This document shows positions 1 to 7,680 of a stretch of DNA of 7,680 nt, in pieces. The stretch is from Paramoeba atlantica (Eukaryota > Protista > Discosea): the NCBI GenBank assembly GCA_977017575.1, contig CDRNVI010000245.1:1-7680 (forward strand). Reading direction: 5' to 3'. Below the pieces are notes generated by a model. The model was not told where the DNA came from. It was given only the letters and a program-made list of their open reading frames with translations, and did no database searches. Every line of letters begins with the position of its first letter. Position 1 is the stretch's first letter. The position numbers were made by a program, and so were the translations under genes.

Positions 1-96
1 CTGTTAATTTTCCATCAACATCATAATTTTTATTTAAAAATTTTAATCAAAATCAATTTTATAAACATTTTTTGTAAAAAAATTAAAATTTTTACT

Positions 97-166
97 GGAA
101 AATTACGGTGAGATGCATAAAAATTAGATTTAAACATAAATTTATGCAAACTACCGTTTAATTTCC
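97..166. other. Imperfect hairpin (also at 4706-4775)
   Basis: tgcataaa 114-121 / tttatgca 141-148; acggt 105-109 / accgt 153-157; looser ggaaaatta / taatttcc at the base. Confidence 0.6.
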
Positions 167-512
167 AACAAAATTTAAATTTTTTTCATTCAAAAATAGA
201 TTTTTTTAATTTTTCGCCGACAAAATTGAAAAAAAATTGAATTTTCATTCAAAAAGTTGTAAAATTGAGTCTCAGGATGAAAAAGTGGAAAAAGACCACA
301 TTTTATCAATTCGACGCTAAATTAGCAAAAAATTTCAATTTCTACACCTAAATGACTGTAGAAATTGGTGTTTTCCTACAATTTTGTGGAAACTCCTGAC
401 AAACACTGCTAAATTTCCAACAAAAAGTCAATTTGCAGGTGCTGCCCGTGGATTTTCCAACAAAATACTAGCAAAACTACTCAAAATGCTATTTTTCCGG
501 CAGAAAACCGTC

Positions 513-656
513 AAAATCTGCTTTTTCTGGGCAGGAATGACAAAAACGGCCCAAAAAAGGCCCTGTCATTTTGCCCAAAAACGCAGTATTTTTTCCTGTT
601 CTGGCCTGCAAATTAGCGGATGTCCAAGTGCCCCAAAAAAAGTGACTTGGACTCCG
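513..656 (+). other. Two GC-richer hairpins with C-A(n) loops (also at 5122-5265)
   Basis: 513-592: aaaat-ctgc/gcag-t-atttt, tgggcag/ttgccca (one G-U), aatgaca/tgtcatt, ggcc-CAAAAAA-ggcc. 617-656: cgga/tccg plus gtccaagt/acttggac. Confidence 0.65.
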
Positions 657-804
657 AGCCGACTCGAAAAGTCGTATTTTCCGGCAGAAACGAAAAAATA
701 TGCCACATTTTGTCCGACGATTATTTACAACTTTTTCTCGCATCCCATCATAGCGATTTTGCGGATCTGCAAGTTGGGAGGGAACCAACTGCATTTTTTG
801 GCCG

Positions 805-957
805 TTTTGAACCCGTTTTGTAAAAAATCGCATATATAAACTCCATAATTTCCCCTCAGAAATCTGCCACTTTTGGACGCCAAAAAGTGTTTTGCAGAAT
901 CTCGAGGGCAAAATAGGAGTTTTTTGACCCGATTTTGTGAACAAAACTGGCATCAAA
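805..957 (+). other. ~150-nt rod-like hairpin (also at 5414-5566)
   Basis: Nested stems: ttttga/tcaaaa, gttttgt 815-821/acaaaac 940-946, aaaatcg/cgatttt, aaactcc 838-844/ggagttt 916-922, ccctc/gaggg, tctgc/gcaga, cacttttgg 868-876/ccaaaaagtg 880-889. The loop is ACG in copy A and AGA in copy B. Confidence 0.75.
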
Positions 958-1092
958 AACTATTCCAAATGCTCCAATCCGAATTTCAGCTATTGAACAC
1001 TAAAAATGCTGAAAATCGCTATTTCGCACTGGAATTCCGCCAAAACTCCTTTTCAATGCGTATTTTGGGCGAGAAAATCGTGAATTTTATAA

Positions 1093-1372
1093 TTTTTAAA
1101 CTTTTTTTTGTATAATTTATCATTTTTAGCGCGGATTTGTATAATTTCTCGCATAATTTATTAGTTTTATAGCGTTGTAGTTAAAATTTTCATAATTTTA
1201 TCATCAAAGTCATCATTTTTCTATAATTTCAAACAAAATTATTAAAAAAAATGTTGTCTCAGACGAAAAAATTGCATGAAAGTTGTTAAACAACACTAAA
1301 ACTAAAAAAATATCCCGCAGAAATTAAAAAACCGTGATAAAAATTTATAAATTCAAAAGAAAAATTTAAAAA
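1093..1372 (+). other. ~280-nt imperfect rod-like hairpin (also at 5702-5981)
   Basis: T-rich arm against A-rich arm in colinear nested order: tttttaaa/tttaaaaa, tttatca/tgataaa, gcggat/atcccgc, ttagtttt/aaaactaa, gttgt/acaac, tttcat/atgaaa, cattttt/aaaaatg, ataattt/aaattat around loop caaaca (1230-1235). Confidence 0.65.
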
Positions 1373-1392
1373 TCTTAAAAATTTATGATGAA

Positions 1393-1421
1393 ATCATCTT
1401 CTTTGTACCAAAATCAGATGT
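1393..1421 (-). repeat. Partial reverse copy (R') of the ~85-nt module (also 6002-6030)
   Basis: atcatcttctttgtaccaaaatcagatgt is identical to the core of the reverse module at 6431-6459. It is enclosed by tgatg 1386-1390 / catca 1425-1429. Confidence 0.85.
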
Positions 1422-1562
1422 AAACATCAAAAAATTTTTTTAAAATCACTAGTTGAAACCATCGTCTATGGTTTCTTTTGTTAATGATCAATGTTTTCAT
1501 TTCATTCATAACATTTTCACGTTAACTTCGTTCAACTAACTTGAATTTTATTAAAATTATGA

Positions 1563-1619
1563 TTCATAAAATAATTTTTTCATTGCTAAAAATAAAACCG
1601 CAATGGAAATTATTATGAA
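1563..1619 (+). other. Hairpin (also 6172-6228)
   Basis: ttttcattgc 1577-1586 / gcaatggaaa 1600-1609 (one U-G), extended by aataa/ttatt and ttcat/atgaa. The two inter-copy substitutions (1595, 1598) both lie in the loop. Confidence 0.7.
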
Positions 1620-1633
1620 ACAAGTTTTAATAA

Positions 1634-1659
1634 TTCAAACTTAAGTTTGAACTCGAGTT
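1634..1659. other. Overlapping perfect palindromes (18 bp + 10 bp), also 6243-6268
   Basis: ttcaaacttaagtttgaa 1634-1651 and aactcgagtt 1650-1659 are each their own reverse complement. Confidence 0.9.
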
Positions 1660-1806
1660 ATAAAATTTTAATAACATTAATATATACTTTTAAATAACTT
1701 CTATAATTAATTCAAAAGAGAATTTATAATTAAGAACTTATAAAACTATATTTAATGATTTAAAACTTAATAACTTGTTGTAATGTTTTCAATATAATAA
1801 TATATT

Positions 1807-1877
1807 TACGATATATTATCTTCTTTGTTCCAAAATCAGATGTTGATTATCGTACATTCTTATTACATGAAAACATA
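1807..1877 (-). repeat. Reverse-orientation copy (R) of the ~85-nt module
   Basis: 1831-1877 is the reverse complement of 2039-2085 (47 nt, 2 mismatches). 1833-1876 is the perfect reverse complement of 2395-2438 (44 nt). Confidence 0.95.
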
Positions 1878-2040
1878 ACAACATAAAGAATACAATAGGC
1901 ACTCCTTACATTTAAATGCCCTTAATATAATTTATCGATATATTTAATTACACAAATAATTTAAAATATAATTTATAAAATATTAATAAAGTTCATGTAA
2001 AATGTAAGAAGTTACCCTAGTTTTCCTGGTATTGTGAGTA

Positions 2041-2125
2041 TGTTTTCATGTAATAAACATGTACGATAATCAACATCTGATTTTGACTCAAAGCAGAGTA
2101 ATCATCGTTAAATATCGTTACAAAG
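2041..2125 (+). repeat. Forward module F1 (aaacatg variant)
   Basis: gttttcatgtaataaacatgtacgataatcaacatctgattttgactcaaagcagagtaatcatcgttaaatatcgttacaaag; near-identical copies at 2395, 6655 and 7021. Confidence 0.95.
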
Positions 2126-2394
2126 TTATTACAAATAAAACATAAATCACTAATAACAGGAAAATATTAAATACAAAAATATTTAATAAACTTCGATGCA
2201 AAAAAGCATCTTGACAATCTCTGTGTTTTTGTTAAAAAAAATAGCGTAAAACTACAAAACCATATATATAAAATGAAAAGTGTATAAAAAAGAAAAGCAT
2301 ACACTTTGATACATTCAATCGAAAAATATCTCAATCATGTATCATTAATTTTAGTATATATGGTAGGAGTTTTACCTTTACAGTGCTATTAGTC

Positions 2395-2480
2395 ATGTTT
2401 TCATGTAATAAGAATGTACGATAATCAACATCTGATTTGCACTCAAAGTAGAGTAATCATCGTTAAATATCAGTACAAAG
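2395..2480 (+). repeat. Forward module F2 (aagaatg variant)
   Basis: Direct repeat of 2041-2125, about 355 nt downstream. Confidence 0.95.
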
Positions 2481-2517
2481 TCATTACAAGAAAACTAAAG
2501 ATTAAAGCACTGTAAAA

Positions 2518-2552
2518 TTGCACTAAGATTTCCTTCAGAAATTCAAGTGCAA
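2518..2552 (+). other. TAAGATTT..AAATTCAA hairpin family, member H1
   Basis: ttgcact-aa-gatttc-cttca-gaaatt-ca-agtgcaa. Confidence 0.9.
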
Positions 2553-2629
2553 ATATCCGCCCAACTTATAAAATATAAGTGGCGTCTATATATATTTTTT
2601 TATCGAAAAAAACGATAAATAAATAAAGA

Positions 2630-2662
2630 TCATGATAAGATTTCTACGAAATTCAATCATGA
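2630..2662 (+). other. TAAGATTT..AAATTCAA hairpin family, member H2
   Basis: tcatgat-aa-gatttc-tac-gaaatt-ca-atcatga. Confidence 0.9.
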
Positions 2663-2663
2663 A

Positions 2664-2683
2664 GCATACACTATAGTGTATGC
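2664..2683. other. Perfect 20-bp palindrome (also 7322-7341)
   Basis: gcatacactatagtgtatgc equals its own reverse complement. Confidence 0.95.
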
Positions 2684-2827
2684 AAATTATTACAAAAATA
2701 ATAATTTTAAAATTTTTTCTTCGAAATTCAAAGAAGAATTTATTCGAAAAAAATATAAATTTTAATGTTTTCGTGTTTAACTACAACTTAAATTTATATA
2801 TATTTCGTTAAATTAAGAGAATAATTA

Positions 2828-3100
2828 AACGAAACTGTTACTCGGCAAAAATAAGGGAATTTTTGAGTAACAGACCGTTCAAATTGAAAACAAAAAAACA
2901 ATTTGCACGGCAATTCTTGGGGTTTTTACGCCTCACGGCTTCGTGATTGGACTAAAGAGCAGGAGCGAGAGCAAGAAAGTTTGCAGGGGTAGTTGAGTTA
3001 GCTATTCCCGGTGGAAGCTAACCTCGATTCTTTAGTCTTTAGTTGTGGTAATTTGGGATAGTGAAGTAAAATTTTTAAAGTTCACTATCGACAATTACTA
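2828..3100 (+). ncRNA. Putative structured RNA domain of unknown family (GC-richer, multi-hairpin); partial second copy 7486-7680
   Basis: ctgttactc 2835-2843/gagtaacag 2865-2873; tcacg-gctt-cgtga 2933-2946; ggactaaagag 2949-2959/ttctttagtct 3028-3038 enclosing gcaa/ttgc and gttagct 2997-3003/agctaac 3016-3022; gatagtgaa 3057-3065/ttcactatc 3081-3089. No family motif recognised; that it is an RNA is inference. Confidence 0.35.
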
Positions 3101-3640
3101 TTCTCTTTCATCTTTTGGCGTGCATTGCTAATTGATCCCAATAGACAATCACATTCAGAAATGATCGTTGCTATCCCTATATGTATGTAAAATATCATAC
3201 ATAAGAATCAATAAGATCTATTTCGTCTCCTCTTTCATCCTTTTAACATAGCAAGACTAATCTATATTATATAATTATTATTCAACTTTTTTAATTATAT
3301 TTTATCTGCTTGAACACCATAGTTCGATAAAAAATAAATAAAAAGATGAATAAATAACTAAAAAATAAAGATAGACAAGAACAAGAATAGTTTAGTTTAA
3401 TTCCGTGTTAAATCCTCAATCCTTAAGTCGGATTTGTCACTCCATATACGATCAAACTTTATTTACTTAAATTTTTACAAAGATAGTAAAATTAAAAGTA
3501 TAAAGATGATCTAGCTCACCAGTTTTATTTAAATTAAAATCTTACACAATGATTTTATATTTATAAACTACTCGCTTCCATCGACCCTCGACTTTGTTGA
3601 AGTTTAAGTTTTTGAGTTTACGATATTAAAGAGAAAAAAA

Positions 3641-3786
3641 ATATTATTGCGCTCTATTGGTGGGGCTTTCGTTAAATTATTAAAAGCTCAACGTCATTGT
3701 TCGCGTTTTACGTTACACTCCACAAGCTAAACAAGTGCGTTCTGCCTTAATAATCACTACCCCTCACCAAAAGGTCGCAATAATAT
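3641..3786 (+). other. 146-nt rod-like hairpin
   Basis: atattattgcg 3641-3651/cgcaataatat 3776-3786; ttggtgggg 3657-3665/cctcaccaa 3762-3770 (one G-U); attattaa 3676-3683/ttaataat 3747-3754; ttgtt 3697-3701/aacaa 3730-3734. Confidence 0.75.
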
Positions 3787-3790
3787 ATGT

Positions 3791-3894
3791 TTTTAGCGTT
3801 TAAGATCTGGAGACCATTTTCAAAATAGAAAATGTCAATCGCTTTTTTCTTACGCAAGTACGTCAAAAAAATCGTTTTTCTCCATGAGCTAAAA
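3791..3894 (+). other. Branched hairpin domain including a C-GCAA-G loop
   Basis: ttttagc/gctaaaa, tggaga 3808-3813/tctcca 3879-3884, cattttc 3815-3821/gaaaatg 3828-3834, tac-GCAA-gta 3851-3860. Confidence 0.55.
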
Positions 3895-4157
3895 CGAGTT
3901 AGTTCGATCGGGCTTTTTTTGATGCTTTTTTTGGATCGCAGCTTCAACAAAAAAAAATTTCCGCTGCTGTTTTCCAACAAAGAAAATTATAAAAAAATAA
4001 TTTTGTTGTTGTCAAATACGATCTTTTAAAATATAAAATTTTTTTTATCGTTATAAATTTTATTCCGACATAAATTTGTTGGAAAAGTAACAGTAAAAAG
4101 TTGTTAATGAAAAAAAAATAAATTCATTAACAACAACGTTGATGAAAAATAACAATC

Positions 4158-4625
4158 AACGCTGTTAAATTTCCAACAAAATAATGTCAGAAAAAAATTT
4201 CTGCCGAAATAATTTAGCTGATTAAATTTTTATCACGACAAAAATATTTTTTTGTTGATCAATTAAATCGTTATTAACAAAAAAGTTATAACGCTGTTAA
4301 TTTTCCAACATAAAAATTTTTTATCTCTCAAAAAATATTTTTTGATGTTCAAAGTTATCGTTTGATAACAAAAAAGTTATAACGCTGTAACTTTTCCAAC
4401 AAAAAAAATTTTTTTTCGTGTTAAAAATTATTTTTGATCAATAAAAATTATTTTCGATGTTCAAATTCATCGTTTGATAACAAAAAAGTTATAACGCTGT
4501 TAATTTTCCATCAAAAATTATTTTTTTTGCTTCAAAAATTTTTTTTAACATAAAAATTTATAATGATGATTACAAAATAAGTGTTGCAACTCAAAAAAGT
4601 TGTTTAACACTGTGAATTTTCCATC
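4158..4625 (+). repeat. Degenerate minisatellite, ~90-130-nt period, core aacgctgttaattttccaac
   Basis: Core at 4158, 4290, 4381, 4493 and 4606 (spacings 132, 91, 112, 113). tttgataacaaaaaagttataacgctgt occurs at 4361 and 4473. Outlying cores at 402/5011 and ~3962; a reversed core at ~4076-4093. Confidence 0.85.
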
Positions 4626-6420
4626 AACATCATAATTTTTATTTAAAAATTTTAATCAAAATCAATTTTATAAACATTTTTTGTAAAAAAATTAAAATTT
4701 TTACTGGAAAATTACGGTGAGATGCATAAAAATTAGATTTAAACATAAATTTATGCAAACTACCGTTTAATTTCCAACAAAATTTAAATTTTTTTCATTC
4801 AAAAATAGATTTTTTTAATTTTTCGCTGACAAAATTGAAAAAAAATTGAATTTTCATTCAAAAAGTTGTAAAATTGAGTCTCAGGATGAAAAAGTGGAAA
4901 AAGACCACATTTTATCAATTCGACGCTAAATTAGCAAAAAATTTCAATTTCTACACCTAAATGACTGTAGAAATTGGTGTTTTCCTACAATTTTGTGGAA
5001 ATCCCTGACAAACACTGCTAAATTTCCAACAAAAAGTCAATTTGCAGGTGCTGCCCGTGGATTTTCCAACAAAATACTAGCAAAACTACTCAAAATGCTA
5101 TTTTTCCGGCAGAAAACCGTCAAAATCTGCTTTTTCTGGGCAGGAATGACAAAAACGGCCCAAAAAAGGCCCTGTCATTTTGCCCAAAAACGCAGTATTT
5201 TTTCCTGTTCTGGCCTGCAAATTAGCGGATGTCCAAGTGCCCCAAAAAAAGTGACTTGCACTCCGAGCCGACTCGAAAAGTCGTATTTTCCGGCAGAAAC
5301 GAAAAAATATGCCACATTTTGTCCGACGATTATTTACAACTTTTTCTCGCATCCCATCATAGCGATTTTGCGGATCTGCAGGTTGGGAGGGAGCCAACTG
5401 CATTTTTTGGCCGTTTTGAACCCGTTTTGTAAAAAATCGCATATATAAACTCCTTAATTTCCCCTCAGAAATCTGCCACTTTTGGAGACCAAAAAGTGTT
5501 TTGCAGAATCTAAAGTGGAAAATAGGAGTTTTTTGACCCGATTTTGTGAACAAAACTGGCATCAAAAACTATTCCAAATGCTCCAATCCGAATTTCAGCT
5601 ATTGAACACTAAAAATGCTGAAAATCGCTATTTCGCACTGGAATTCCGCCAAAACTCCTTTTCAATGCGTATTTTGGGCGAGAAAACCGTCGATTTTATA
5701 ATTTTTAAACTTTTTTTTGTATAATTTATCATTTTTAGCGCGGATTTCTATAATTTCTCGCATAATTTATTAGTTTTATAGCGTTGTAGTTAAAATTTTC
5801 ATAATTTTATCATCAAAGTCATCATTTTTCTATAATTTCAAACAAAATTATTAAAAAAAATGTTGTCTCAGACGAAAAAATTGCATGAAAGTTGTTAAAC
5901 AACACTAAAACTAAAAAAATATCCCGCAGAAATTAAAAAACCGTGATAAAAATTTATAAATTCAAAAGAAAAATTTAAAAATCTTAAAAATTTATGATGA
6001 AATCATCTTCTTTGTACCAAAATCAGATGTAAACATCAAAAAATTTTTTTAAAATCACTAGTTGAAACCATCGTCTATGGTTTCTTTTGTTAATGATCAA
6101 TGTTTTCATTTCATTCATAACATTTTCACGTTAACTTCGTTCAACTAACTTGAATTTTATTAAAATTATGATTCATAAAATAATTTTTTCATTGCTAAAA
6201 ATAGAATCGCAATGGAAATTATTATGAAACAAGTTTTAATAATTCAAACTTAAGTTTGAACTCGAGTTATAAAATTTTATAAATTTAAATTATAATTTCA
6301 ATCATTTCTATAATTAATTCAATAGAGAATTTATAATTATGAAACTATGAAACTATATTTAATGATTTAAAATTTAATAATCCCTGTATGTGTTCTTTAT
6401 GTTTTCAATGTCTGATGATA

Positions 6421-6490
6421 TGTTCGATATATCATCTTCTTTGTACCAAAATCAGATGTTGATTATCGTACATTCTTATTACATGAAAAC
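6421..6490 (-). repeat. Reverse module R, copy B
   Basis: 6447-6490 is the perfect 44-nt reverse complement of 6655-6698. Confidence 0.95.
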
Positions 6491-6654
6491 AAAAAAGAAC
6501 ATACAACAGGGAAATACTAAGATACTTTAATAACTATTATGTATATAAATTGATCGAATATATAATTACAAAAATAATTTAAAATATTCAATAATATTAA
6601 ATATATATAGTTATTAAAGTGATCTTGTATCCTAGTTCATGTCGATTCTTTTAG

Positions 6655-6737
6655 GTTTTCATGTAATAAGAATGTACGATAATCAACATCTGATTTTGAC
6701 TCAAAGTAGAGTAATCATCGTTAAATATCAGTACAAA
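6655..6737 (+). repeat. Forward module, copy B first (aagaatg variant)
   Basis: Matches 2397-2479 apart from a few bases, and shares the aagaatg and tatcagtaca diagnostic bases. Confidence 0.95.
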
Positions 6738-6779
6738 ACTTATTACAAAGAAAACAACTAATAAAGCATCGACATGAAA

Positions 6780-6849
6780 TTCTGCTAAGATTTCTACGAA
6801 ATTCAAGCAGAAAATTACACTAAGATTTCCTATAGAAATTCAAGTGTAA
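6780..6849 (+). other. Tandem pair of TAAGATTT..AAATTCAA hairpins (H3 6780-6812, H4 6815-6849)
   Basis: ttctgct-aa-gatttc-tac-gaaatt-ca-agcagaa; ttacact-aa-gatttc-ctata-gaaatt-ca-agtgtaa. Confidence 0.9.
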
Positions 6850-7020
6850 ACAAACATTAGTATTGCAAAAACAATCTATGTTTGTATTAAAAAAAACACA
6901 TCTAGAACAATATAATATAAATCAATAAAAATATTTAATTACAAAAATAATATAAAATATAATTTATAAATTTATTATTAAAATGATCTAGATGAACATA
7001 TTCCTGGGTATTCTAATGTG

Positions 7021-7103
7021 GTTTTCATGTAATAAACATGTACGATAATCAACATCTGATTTTGACTCAAAGTAGAGTAATCATCGTTAAATATCGTATA
7101 AAG
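7021..7103 (+). repeat. Forward module, copy B second (aaacatg variant)
   Basis: Matches 2042-2125 apart from a few bases, and shares the aaacatg and tatcgt diagnostic bases. Confidence 0.95.
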
Positions 7104-7142
7104 TTTATTAATAATAAAACCACAAAGGAATCCAAGGAATAA

Positions 7143-7212
7143 TTATGCTAAGATTTATACTAAATTCAAGCATAAGATTGCACTAAGATTTCCTTCAGAA
7201 ATTCAAGTGCAA
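7143..7212 (+). other. Tandem pair of TAAGATTT..AAATTCAA hairpins (H5 7143-7175, H6 7178-7212)
   Basis: ttatgct-aa-gattta-tac-taaatt-ca-agcataa; ttgcact-aa-gatttc-cttca-gaaatt-ca-agtgcaa. Confidence 0.9.
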
Positions 7213-7285
7213 ATATCCGCTCAACTTATAAAATATAAGTGGCGTCTATATATTTAATCATTACAAAAATAATGAATTAAATAGA

Positions 7286-7320
7286 TCATGATAAGATTTT
7301 TTACAAAAATTCAATCATGA
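7286..7320 (+). other. TAAGATTT..AAATTCAA hairpin H7
   Basis: tcatgat-aa-gattttt-tac-aaaaatt-ca-atcatga; positional homologue of H2 with a different but still paired inner stem. Confidence 0.9.
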
Positions 7321-7680
7321 AGCATACACTATAGTGTATGCAAATTATTACAAAAATAATAATTTTAAAATTTTTTCTTCGAAATTCAAAGAAGAATTTA
7401 TTCGAAAAAAATATAAATTTTAATGTTTACGTGTTTAACTACAACTTAAATTTATATATATTTCGTTAAATTAAGAGAATAATTAAACGAAACTGTTACT
7501 CGGCAAAAATAAGGGAATTTTTGAGTAACAGACCGTTCAAATTGAAAACAAAAAAACAATTTGCACGGCAATTCTTGGGGTTTTTACGCCTCACGGCTTC
7601 GTGATTGGACTAAAGAGCAGGAGCGAGAGCAAGAAAGTTTGCAGGGGTAGTTGAGTTAGCTATTCCCGGTGGTAGCTAAC

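Follow-up and report, generated by a model that had tools for sequence, protein, structure and literature searches.

The window, a 7,680-nt stretch of Paramoeba atlantica contig CDRNVI010000245.1 that we analysed over its whole length, comprises 1.67 units of a tandem repeat of approximately 4.6 kb, with direct repeats at a spacing of 4609–4658. GC content across the window varies from 18 to 42% and mostly lies at approximately 25%. At the scale of the unit, the following features were recognized:

1–4609, plus strand: repeat unit with the class A variable block; unit length 4609 bp, direct repeats at a spacing of 4609/4658, aligned with six units of contig ctg3670c (see below)
4610–7680, plus strand: next unit, partial, with the class B block; approximately 20 B-linked single-nucleotide polymorphisms (SNPs) in its upstream flank
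380–1115: constant block of higher GC content (approximately 40%), containing phased A-tracts as well as non-coding open reading frames (ORFs) that overlap; source of the ORF used for retrieval
4221–4560: 91/112-bp internal subrepeats, inside the 3610–4614 interval of A-type/B-type haplotype switches

The only ORFs found in the unit overlap one another on both strands of the 380–1115 block, and the ORF differences visible between the two window copies alter the amino acid. The precomputed Pfam listing for the products of the retrieved ORFs contained no domain, the tRNA scan of the window yielded none, and the Rfam scan of the window returned three matches with E-values of 0.06–0.65, all far below the gathering score. 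On these grounds we regard the unit as non-coding. Among its ORFs there was none for a reverse transcriptase, integrase or recombinase. A-tracts phased at 10–10.25 bp, the signature of bent DNA, extend over 4000–4609 and 1–1668, approximately 2.3 kb that include the GC-richer block; the A-tract power at this period exceeded the 95th percentile of shuffles by a factor of 1.5 to 3.3 in 1–380, 380–1115, 1115–1668 and 4000–4609, and the signal was absent from the divergent block. Each unit contains at least six occurrences of a CTGTTAAATTTCCAACAAAA-type motif (window 383–428, 454–476, 4139–4519 and 1–20), which constitutes the core of the 91/112-bp subrepeats and may serve as an origin-like site or for the binding of a protein.

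Global alignment of unit A (1–3100) with unit B (4610–7680), scored as identity per 50-nt bin, revealed that identity is 92–100% over 1–1650 and 98–100% over 2666–3015, and falls to 40–94% over 1651–2665. The differing columns of this divergent block begin at 1670 and end at 2648. The two versions of the block differ by 271 substitutions in 949 aligned columns, with 116 further gap columns, against 15 of 1958 and 20 of 1600 columns in the two flanks. The contrast between block and flanks is thus 20- to 30-fold, and it is not a product of chance. The preliminary description of this DNA had reported near-identical flanks (1–1665 and 2655–3022) around a divergent middle, and our alignment agrees, with approximately 99% identity in the flanks compared with 29% substitutions plus indels over 1670–2648. 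It had also given copy B as 49 nt longer, which the lengths between shared anchors reproduce (1132 nt in B, 1083 nt in A), and had seen conserved islands inside the block, which are real: A/B-identical runs of at least 20 nt start at 1830 (46 nt), 2059, 2095, 2414, 2441, 2517 (44 nt) and 2562. The block and its surroundings are laid out as follows:

1670–2648: divergent block, class A version, with modules R and Fa, a 254-nt insert, module Fb and tail hairpins; identical in 5 of 5 class A copies
6278–7306: divergent block, class B version, with modules R, Fb and Fa plus an internal duplication of approximately 365 nt; 99.7% identical to the B copy of ctg3670c
1830–1875: 46-nt island without A/B differences; it forms the invariant arm of R and contains the crossover of the B' copy (see below)
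2664–2683: constant-flank perfect palindrome of 20 nt, located 16 nt beyond the right edge of the block and serving as the right anchor; each unit of the three contigs has it once
3015–3274: flank region in which class-linked SNPs concentrate; a hairpin here shows compensated changes at two pairs (3048/3098 and 3062/3084)

With the non-coding ORF at 489–956 as the query, a homology search retrieved the same ORF on contig ctg3670c of ENA ERZ24900291 (28,027 bp, six units), and a cluster listing led to a second contig of that record, ctg3633c (34,697 bp, of which 20.5 kb were read). The window itself is contained in neither contig. The length of ctg3670c equals six units (27,614 bp) plus 413 bp, which would suit a circle whose assembled ends overlap as well as a fragment of a longer array; the remainder beyond whole units in each contig is evidence neither for nor against circles. 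A 24-nt module core had no exact match in metagenome, prokaryote-genome and viral collections, scans with the 20-nt palindrome gave two unrelated chance matches, and an exact look-up of two window ORFs returned no record. As in a satellite, the units lacking coding capacity follow one another head to tail, with periods of 4482–4657 bp in ctg3670c and 4538 bp in ctg3633c.

From the three contigs, window included, we obtained the block in 12 copies, all delimited by one pair of anchors (window 1601–1630 and 2664–2683), and the divergence proved as focal as the preliminary description had proposed: it recurs in every copy examined and is not spread evenly. The copies form discrete classes. Class A comprises five copies of 1083 nt that are all identical, the window copy matching four copies in ctg3670c to the base; class B comprises two copies of 1131–1132 nt with 3 differences; one copy of 1125 nt, B', is set apart below; and class C comprises four identical copies of 1011 nt in ctg3633c, in which six further places are listed with the same neighbouring products. 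The blocks follow one another as A A B' B A A in ctg3670c and as A B in the window, and ctg3633c is a homogeneous array of C with a period of 4538. The third class, C, rules out a reading with two subfamilies only, and because three contigs were sampled the number of classes could be large. More than two alleles exist at the level of classes, of which there are at least three; within classes, 5 of 5 A and 4 of 4 C copies are identical.

Pure tandem-repeat contigs are prone to assembly errors, and a collapsed repeat might mimic classes through erroneous consensus or chimeric joining; the names of the contigs carry a final 'c', and their lengths each exceed a whole number of units by a remainder. 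We consider such an artefact extremely improbable: class A is identical to the base in the window and in an independent contig, class B is 99.7% identical, and the differences between classes are structured and involve hundreds of positions.

Substitution divergence in the block amounts to 28.6% between A and B, 19.2% between A and C and 30.7% between B and C, compared with 0.8–1.25% in the flanks for all three pairs. The block therefore has a deeper and different genealogy, ((A,C),B), and that of the flanks is star-like. The edges of the block also depend on the pair compared, lying at 1670–2648 for A and B and at 1733–2606 for A and C.

The block itself is an array of imperfect palindromes of approximately 140 nt, which have in common a 43-nt invariant arm and a similar apex and each possess private basal stems. 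A block contains one inverted module (R) and one or two forward modules (F), together with AT-rich spacers and the small hairpins of the tail. As folded DNA, the modules have energies of −19 to −29 kcal/mol and z-scores between −3.2 and −8.1. The modules and the other components of the block are:

1752–1896, minus strand: hairpin module R-A, inverted, its basal stem decayed; folds as DNA at −18.9 kcal/mol (z −3.2); another partner pairs better than its own
2020–2164, plus strand: hairpin module Fa-A; folds as DNA at −29 kcal/mol (z −8.1); its private basal duplex reaches −14.7 kcal/mol, compared with a mean of −6.4 for cross pairs
2375–2519, plus strand: hairpin module Fb-A; z −7.0, own duplex −13.7 kcal/mol
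6368–6512, minus strand: hairpin module R-B; z −6.6, own duplex −14.4 kcal/mol
6633–6777, plus strand: hairpin module Fb-B; z −7.8, own duplex −14.0 kcal/mol
6999–7143, plus strand: hairpin module Fa-B; z −7.6, own duplex −12.0 kcal/mol
2142–2395: 254-nt segment in classes A and C, absent from B; BLAST matches in the window and ctg3670c, in class A copies only
2513–2662: small-hairpin tail in which the core reads AAGATTTC...GAAATTCAA and the closing stems vary; contains direct-repeat families D6, D12 and D14
6543–7213: internal direct duplication of class B, approximately 365 nt (6543–6850 and 6915–7213, 79% identical)

Module content and order differ between classes: A carries R, Fa and Fb; B carries R, Fb and Fa, with the two F modules swapped; and C carries R and a single F module with 95% similarity to Fa-A. 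Positions 2182–2700 of A align with the class C block at approximately 86%. A 29-nt fragment of the R module (the loop and part of the arm) also occurs in the constant region approximately 250 nt to the left of the block (window 1393–1421 and 6002–6030); it is the same in the A and B units and matches the R-B version, not that of R-A.

RNAalifold, applied to eight modules, recovered the invariant apex alone, because indels misalign the 3′ arms, and it was replaced by a test in which the duplex of each of the eight modules with its own 3′ partner is compared with cross pairs. Six of the eight paired best with their own partner (mean −11.3 kcal/mol for own pairs, −6.4 ± 1.75 kcal/mol for cross pairs), and in the remaining modules, R-A and R-C, the basal stems have decayed. 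The private, self-complementary basal stems of these six modules mean that the variable sequence could itself be functional. The stems are almost purely Watson–Crick on both strands, with G.U accounting for 12 of 391 and 19 of 398 pairs, and this near-absence of G.U is easier to reconcile with palindromes at the DNA level, or with ones produced through copying of DNA, than with selection for the fold of a single RNA strand.

The palindromic make-up of the block raises the question of ongoing instability, under which the block would be a present-day mutational hotspot, with slippage, breakage and template switching in AT-rich palindromes and 360-bp subrepeats, and the classes would be young. 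Long palindromes do compose the block (1805–2111 self-folds at 69% and 6435–6710 at 76%), and many of the differences between classes are structural. We nevertheless hold this explanation to be rather unlikely as the main cause: the five A copies and the four C copies are identical to the base, and collinear, clearly orthologous segments of A and C differ by 13–15% in substitutions, which rearrangement alone would hardly produce.

Recombination between classes is directly visible. At all 42 A/B diagnostic columns in 1670–1829, B' has the A state, and from 1876 onward it has the B state, which places the crossover within the 46-nt island at 1830–1875 and makes B' a clean A/B recombinant. Columns 2610 and 2619 of the second B copy are in the A state, so that the right edge of the block shifts between copies. 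The B' unit of ctg3670c additionally has private SNPs at the equivalents of 3963, 4067 and 4562–4579, and another observation in ctg3670c is a unit with a 127-bp deletion (equivalent to window 3808–3934) and a length of 4482. Exchange of modules, as the preliminary description had suggested, can thus be seen in the B' chimera, in the swapped order of Fa and Fb and in the presence of three or two modules, but its mechanism is ordinary homologous recombination.

The flanks are not a neutral background, because they contain clusters of class-linked SNPs. Upstream of the block there are approximately 20 at unit positions 5–1598, clustered at 650–1139, with 1140–1594 free of SNPs; downstream there are sixteen at 2771–3610, clustered at 3015–3274. 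Switches between A-type and B-type haplotypes are located between 3610 and 4614, an interval that includes the subrepeats. The linkage of flank SNPs to class identifies the classes as whole-unit subfamilies. In the constant-flank hairpin at window 3040–3100, the pair 3048/3098 is G:C in A and C and A:T in B, and the pair 3062/3084 is T:A in A and C:G in B and C. A reading of the sharing of flank SNPs among A, B and C as conversion mosaics was dropped, because with three haplotypes every biallelic site is merely private to one lineage.

We propose, with a probability of roughly 0.6, that the divergent block reflects old whole-unit repeat subfamilies reshuffled by ordinary recombination, with no dedicated diversifier. 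The homogeneous array of class C, the class-linked flank SNPs and the B' chimera are what such subfamilies present. According to this proposal, subfamilies A, B and C would each have spread as exact copies through unit amplification or unequal exchange, and recombination or gene conversion would have kept the 3.6-kb constant part at approximately 1% divergence between classes. The palindromic block would be too diverged for homogenisation (19–31% substitutions, with indels and gain, loss and reordering of modules), except in its conserved cores, where crossing-over would generate chimeras. Long AT-rich palindromes may add structural turnover by duplication, deletion and template switching. The outcome would be a variable cassette in a constant chassis that needs no dedicated diversifying machinery. 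Strong purifying selection on the 3.6-kb flanks could, as an alternative to homogenisation, give the same contrast, and identity within a class is uninformative on the long-term rate of change. The class structure, the within-class identity, the recombinant and the genealogies of flank and block favour old classes and recombination over present-day instability alone.

A dedicated mechanism of focal diversification, one of the suggestions of the preliminary description, finds no support in these data. Systems of targeted diversification or cassette exchange, such as diversity-generating retroelements (DGRs), integron-like elements or programmed gene conversion, would be expected to show an enzyme ORF, fixed borders and continual variability from copy to copy; here the unit has no recombinase or reverse transcriptase ORF, the borders are specific to the pair compared (1670–2648 or 1733–2606), the flanks are class-linked, and the copies of a class are identical (5 of 5 A, 4 of 4 C). 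With no enzyme gene, no fixed borders and no within-class variation, nothing indicates a dedicated diversifier. The simpler possibility that the same description had named, two old fixed subfamilies with recently homogenised flanks, largely corresponds to what we found, except that the subfamilies number three.

Subfamilies under concerted evolution are familiar from satellites and macrosatellites, for example from rDNA spacers with variable subrepeat blocks. Like them, the repeat consists of gene-free tandem units with locally homogeneous runs, recombinant units and one segment far more variable than the rest; unlike usual satellites, it has an unusually sharp, 20- to 30-fold contrast, and its variable segment consists of long palindromes in a set order, in which the apex is conserved and the basal stems are private. 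Human palindromic AT-rich repeats (PATRRs) are long AT-rich palindromes that form fragile, recombinogenic sites. They resemble the block in being AT-rich imperfect palindromes of 100–300 bp that are structurally polymorphic, whereas the palindromes of the block are repeated modules, present in every tandem unit and stable within a class. In Trypanosoma brucei, the guide RNA (gRNA) cassettes of minicircles are flanked by 18-bp inverted repeats. These cassettes are comparable to the modules in that they are bounded by inverted repeats and occur in both orientations within a variable region; in T. brucei, however, conservation lies in the inverted repeats and variation in the interior, whereas the modules of the block have a conserved apex and variable basal, outer stems.

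The AT-richness and the phased A-tracts suggest that the repeat is probably, by analogy, putative kinetoplast-type organelle DNA (kDNA) of a Perkinsela-like symbiont. Like the minicircle classes of kinetoplasts, it combines a conserved backbone with a class-specific variable region that is identical within a class, phased A-tracts and AT-richness, and its three discrete classes have in common a conserved region, with flanks 98.75–99.2% identical between classes. Unlike minicircles, it has neither CSB-3 nor UMS, its unit is 4.6 kb long and arranged in head-to-tail arrays of at least 28–35 kb, its gRNA payload is putative, and its variable part is an array of palindromes, partly alignable between classes. 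David et al. (2015) reportedly used the peptidyl-transferase motif of LSU rRNA, ACCTCGNTGT, in their search for the missing mitochondrial rRNA of Perkinsela. The octamer ACCTCGAT at window 3021–3028 equals the first 8 bases of this motif and lies in a local hairpin, the next two bases being a misfit; the match is probably due to chance, with approximately 0.05 expected per unit by our own rough estimate.

Perkinsela kDNA has been described as approximately 120–250 Mbp in size, AT-rich and containing only six protein genes (PMC6334171), and as structurally disordered in a 2026 review (PMC12936278); our literature search found no paper describing a 4.6-kb repeat in Perkinsela kDNA and no account of the make-up of this kDNA. 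The prokinetoplastid P. ankaliazontas has circles of 1.3–2.2 kb and A. spiralis has linear gRNA molecules of approximately 600 bp; prokinetoplastid gRNA molecules combine a conserved region with short gRNA regions, and cassettes of Bodo saltans related to those of T. brucei are also cited (PMC7859406). The gRNA-bearing kDNA of Trypanoplasma borreli resembles the repeat as a large non-trypanosomatid kDNA with tandem repeats and many inverted repeats; in T. borreli, however, the repeats flank unique, gRNA-rich interiors and a CSB-3-like motif is present, whereas here the whole contig is repeat and there is no CSB-3 (PMC9679448).

These parallels led us to weigh a payload of the minicircle kind, in which a bent constant backbone would carry class-specific hairpin cassettes whose variable basal duplexes give rise to guide-like small RNAs, the classes being different guides. 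The discrete classes, identical within themselves and joined to a conserved common backbone, are organized as minicircle classes are, the strong A-tract phasing is absent from the block, each F module possesses a paired basal stem of its own, the prokinetoplastid gRNA molecules just mentioned have a comparable layout, and the guide RNA genes of Perkinsela, like its mitochondrial rRNAs, still lack robust identification (PMC4669381, PMC7859406). We nonetheless judge such a payload to be quite unlikely. No match to the universal CSB-3 (UMS) 12-mer GGGGTTGGTGTA with up to 2 mismatches was found on either strand of the window, the near-absence of G.U speaks for DNA palindromes, the basal stems of R-A and R-C have decayed, and only three classes were seen. 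Three published Perkinsela gRNA candidates, together with the flanks common to three others, are absent from the window, and one candidate is absent as an exact match from the fetched loci; the remaining flanks in File S3 (PMC4669381) are, by eye, unlike the modules described here. In the same file, three published gRNA candidates (cox1, atp6 and cox3) have common conserved flanks around a variable core of approximately 25 nt, which suggests that the candidates with these flanks are a real cassette family, distinct by eye from the modules of the window. The fuller version of the idea, in which the 4.6-kb unit would make up the bulk of a giant Perkinsela-like kDNA as the prokinetoplastid counterpart of guide RNA minicircles, its variable basal duplexes yielding guide-like small RNAs and its constant apex serving as a handle, appears very unlikely to us.

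If the repeat is Perkinsela kDNA, the anatomy of its unit, with a constant bent backbone, a class-specific palindrome block and conserved apices, would give the questions of the nature and possible function of the excess DNA a concrete object. If it is merely a satellite, it would be a clean natural example of how heterology and palindromes isolate a segment from concerted evolution while conserved cores still permit crossing-over.
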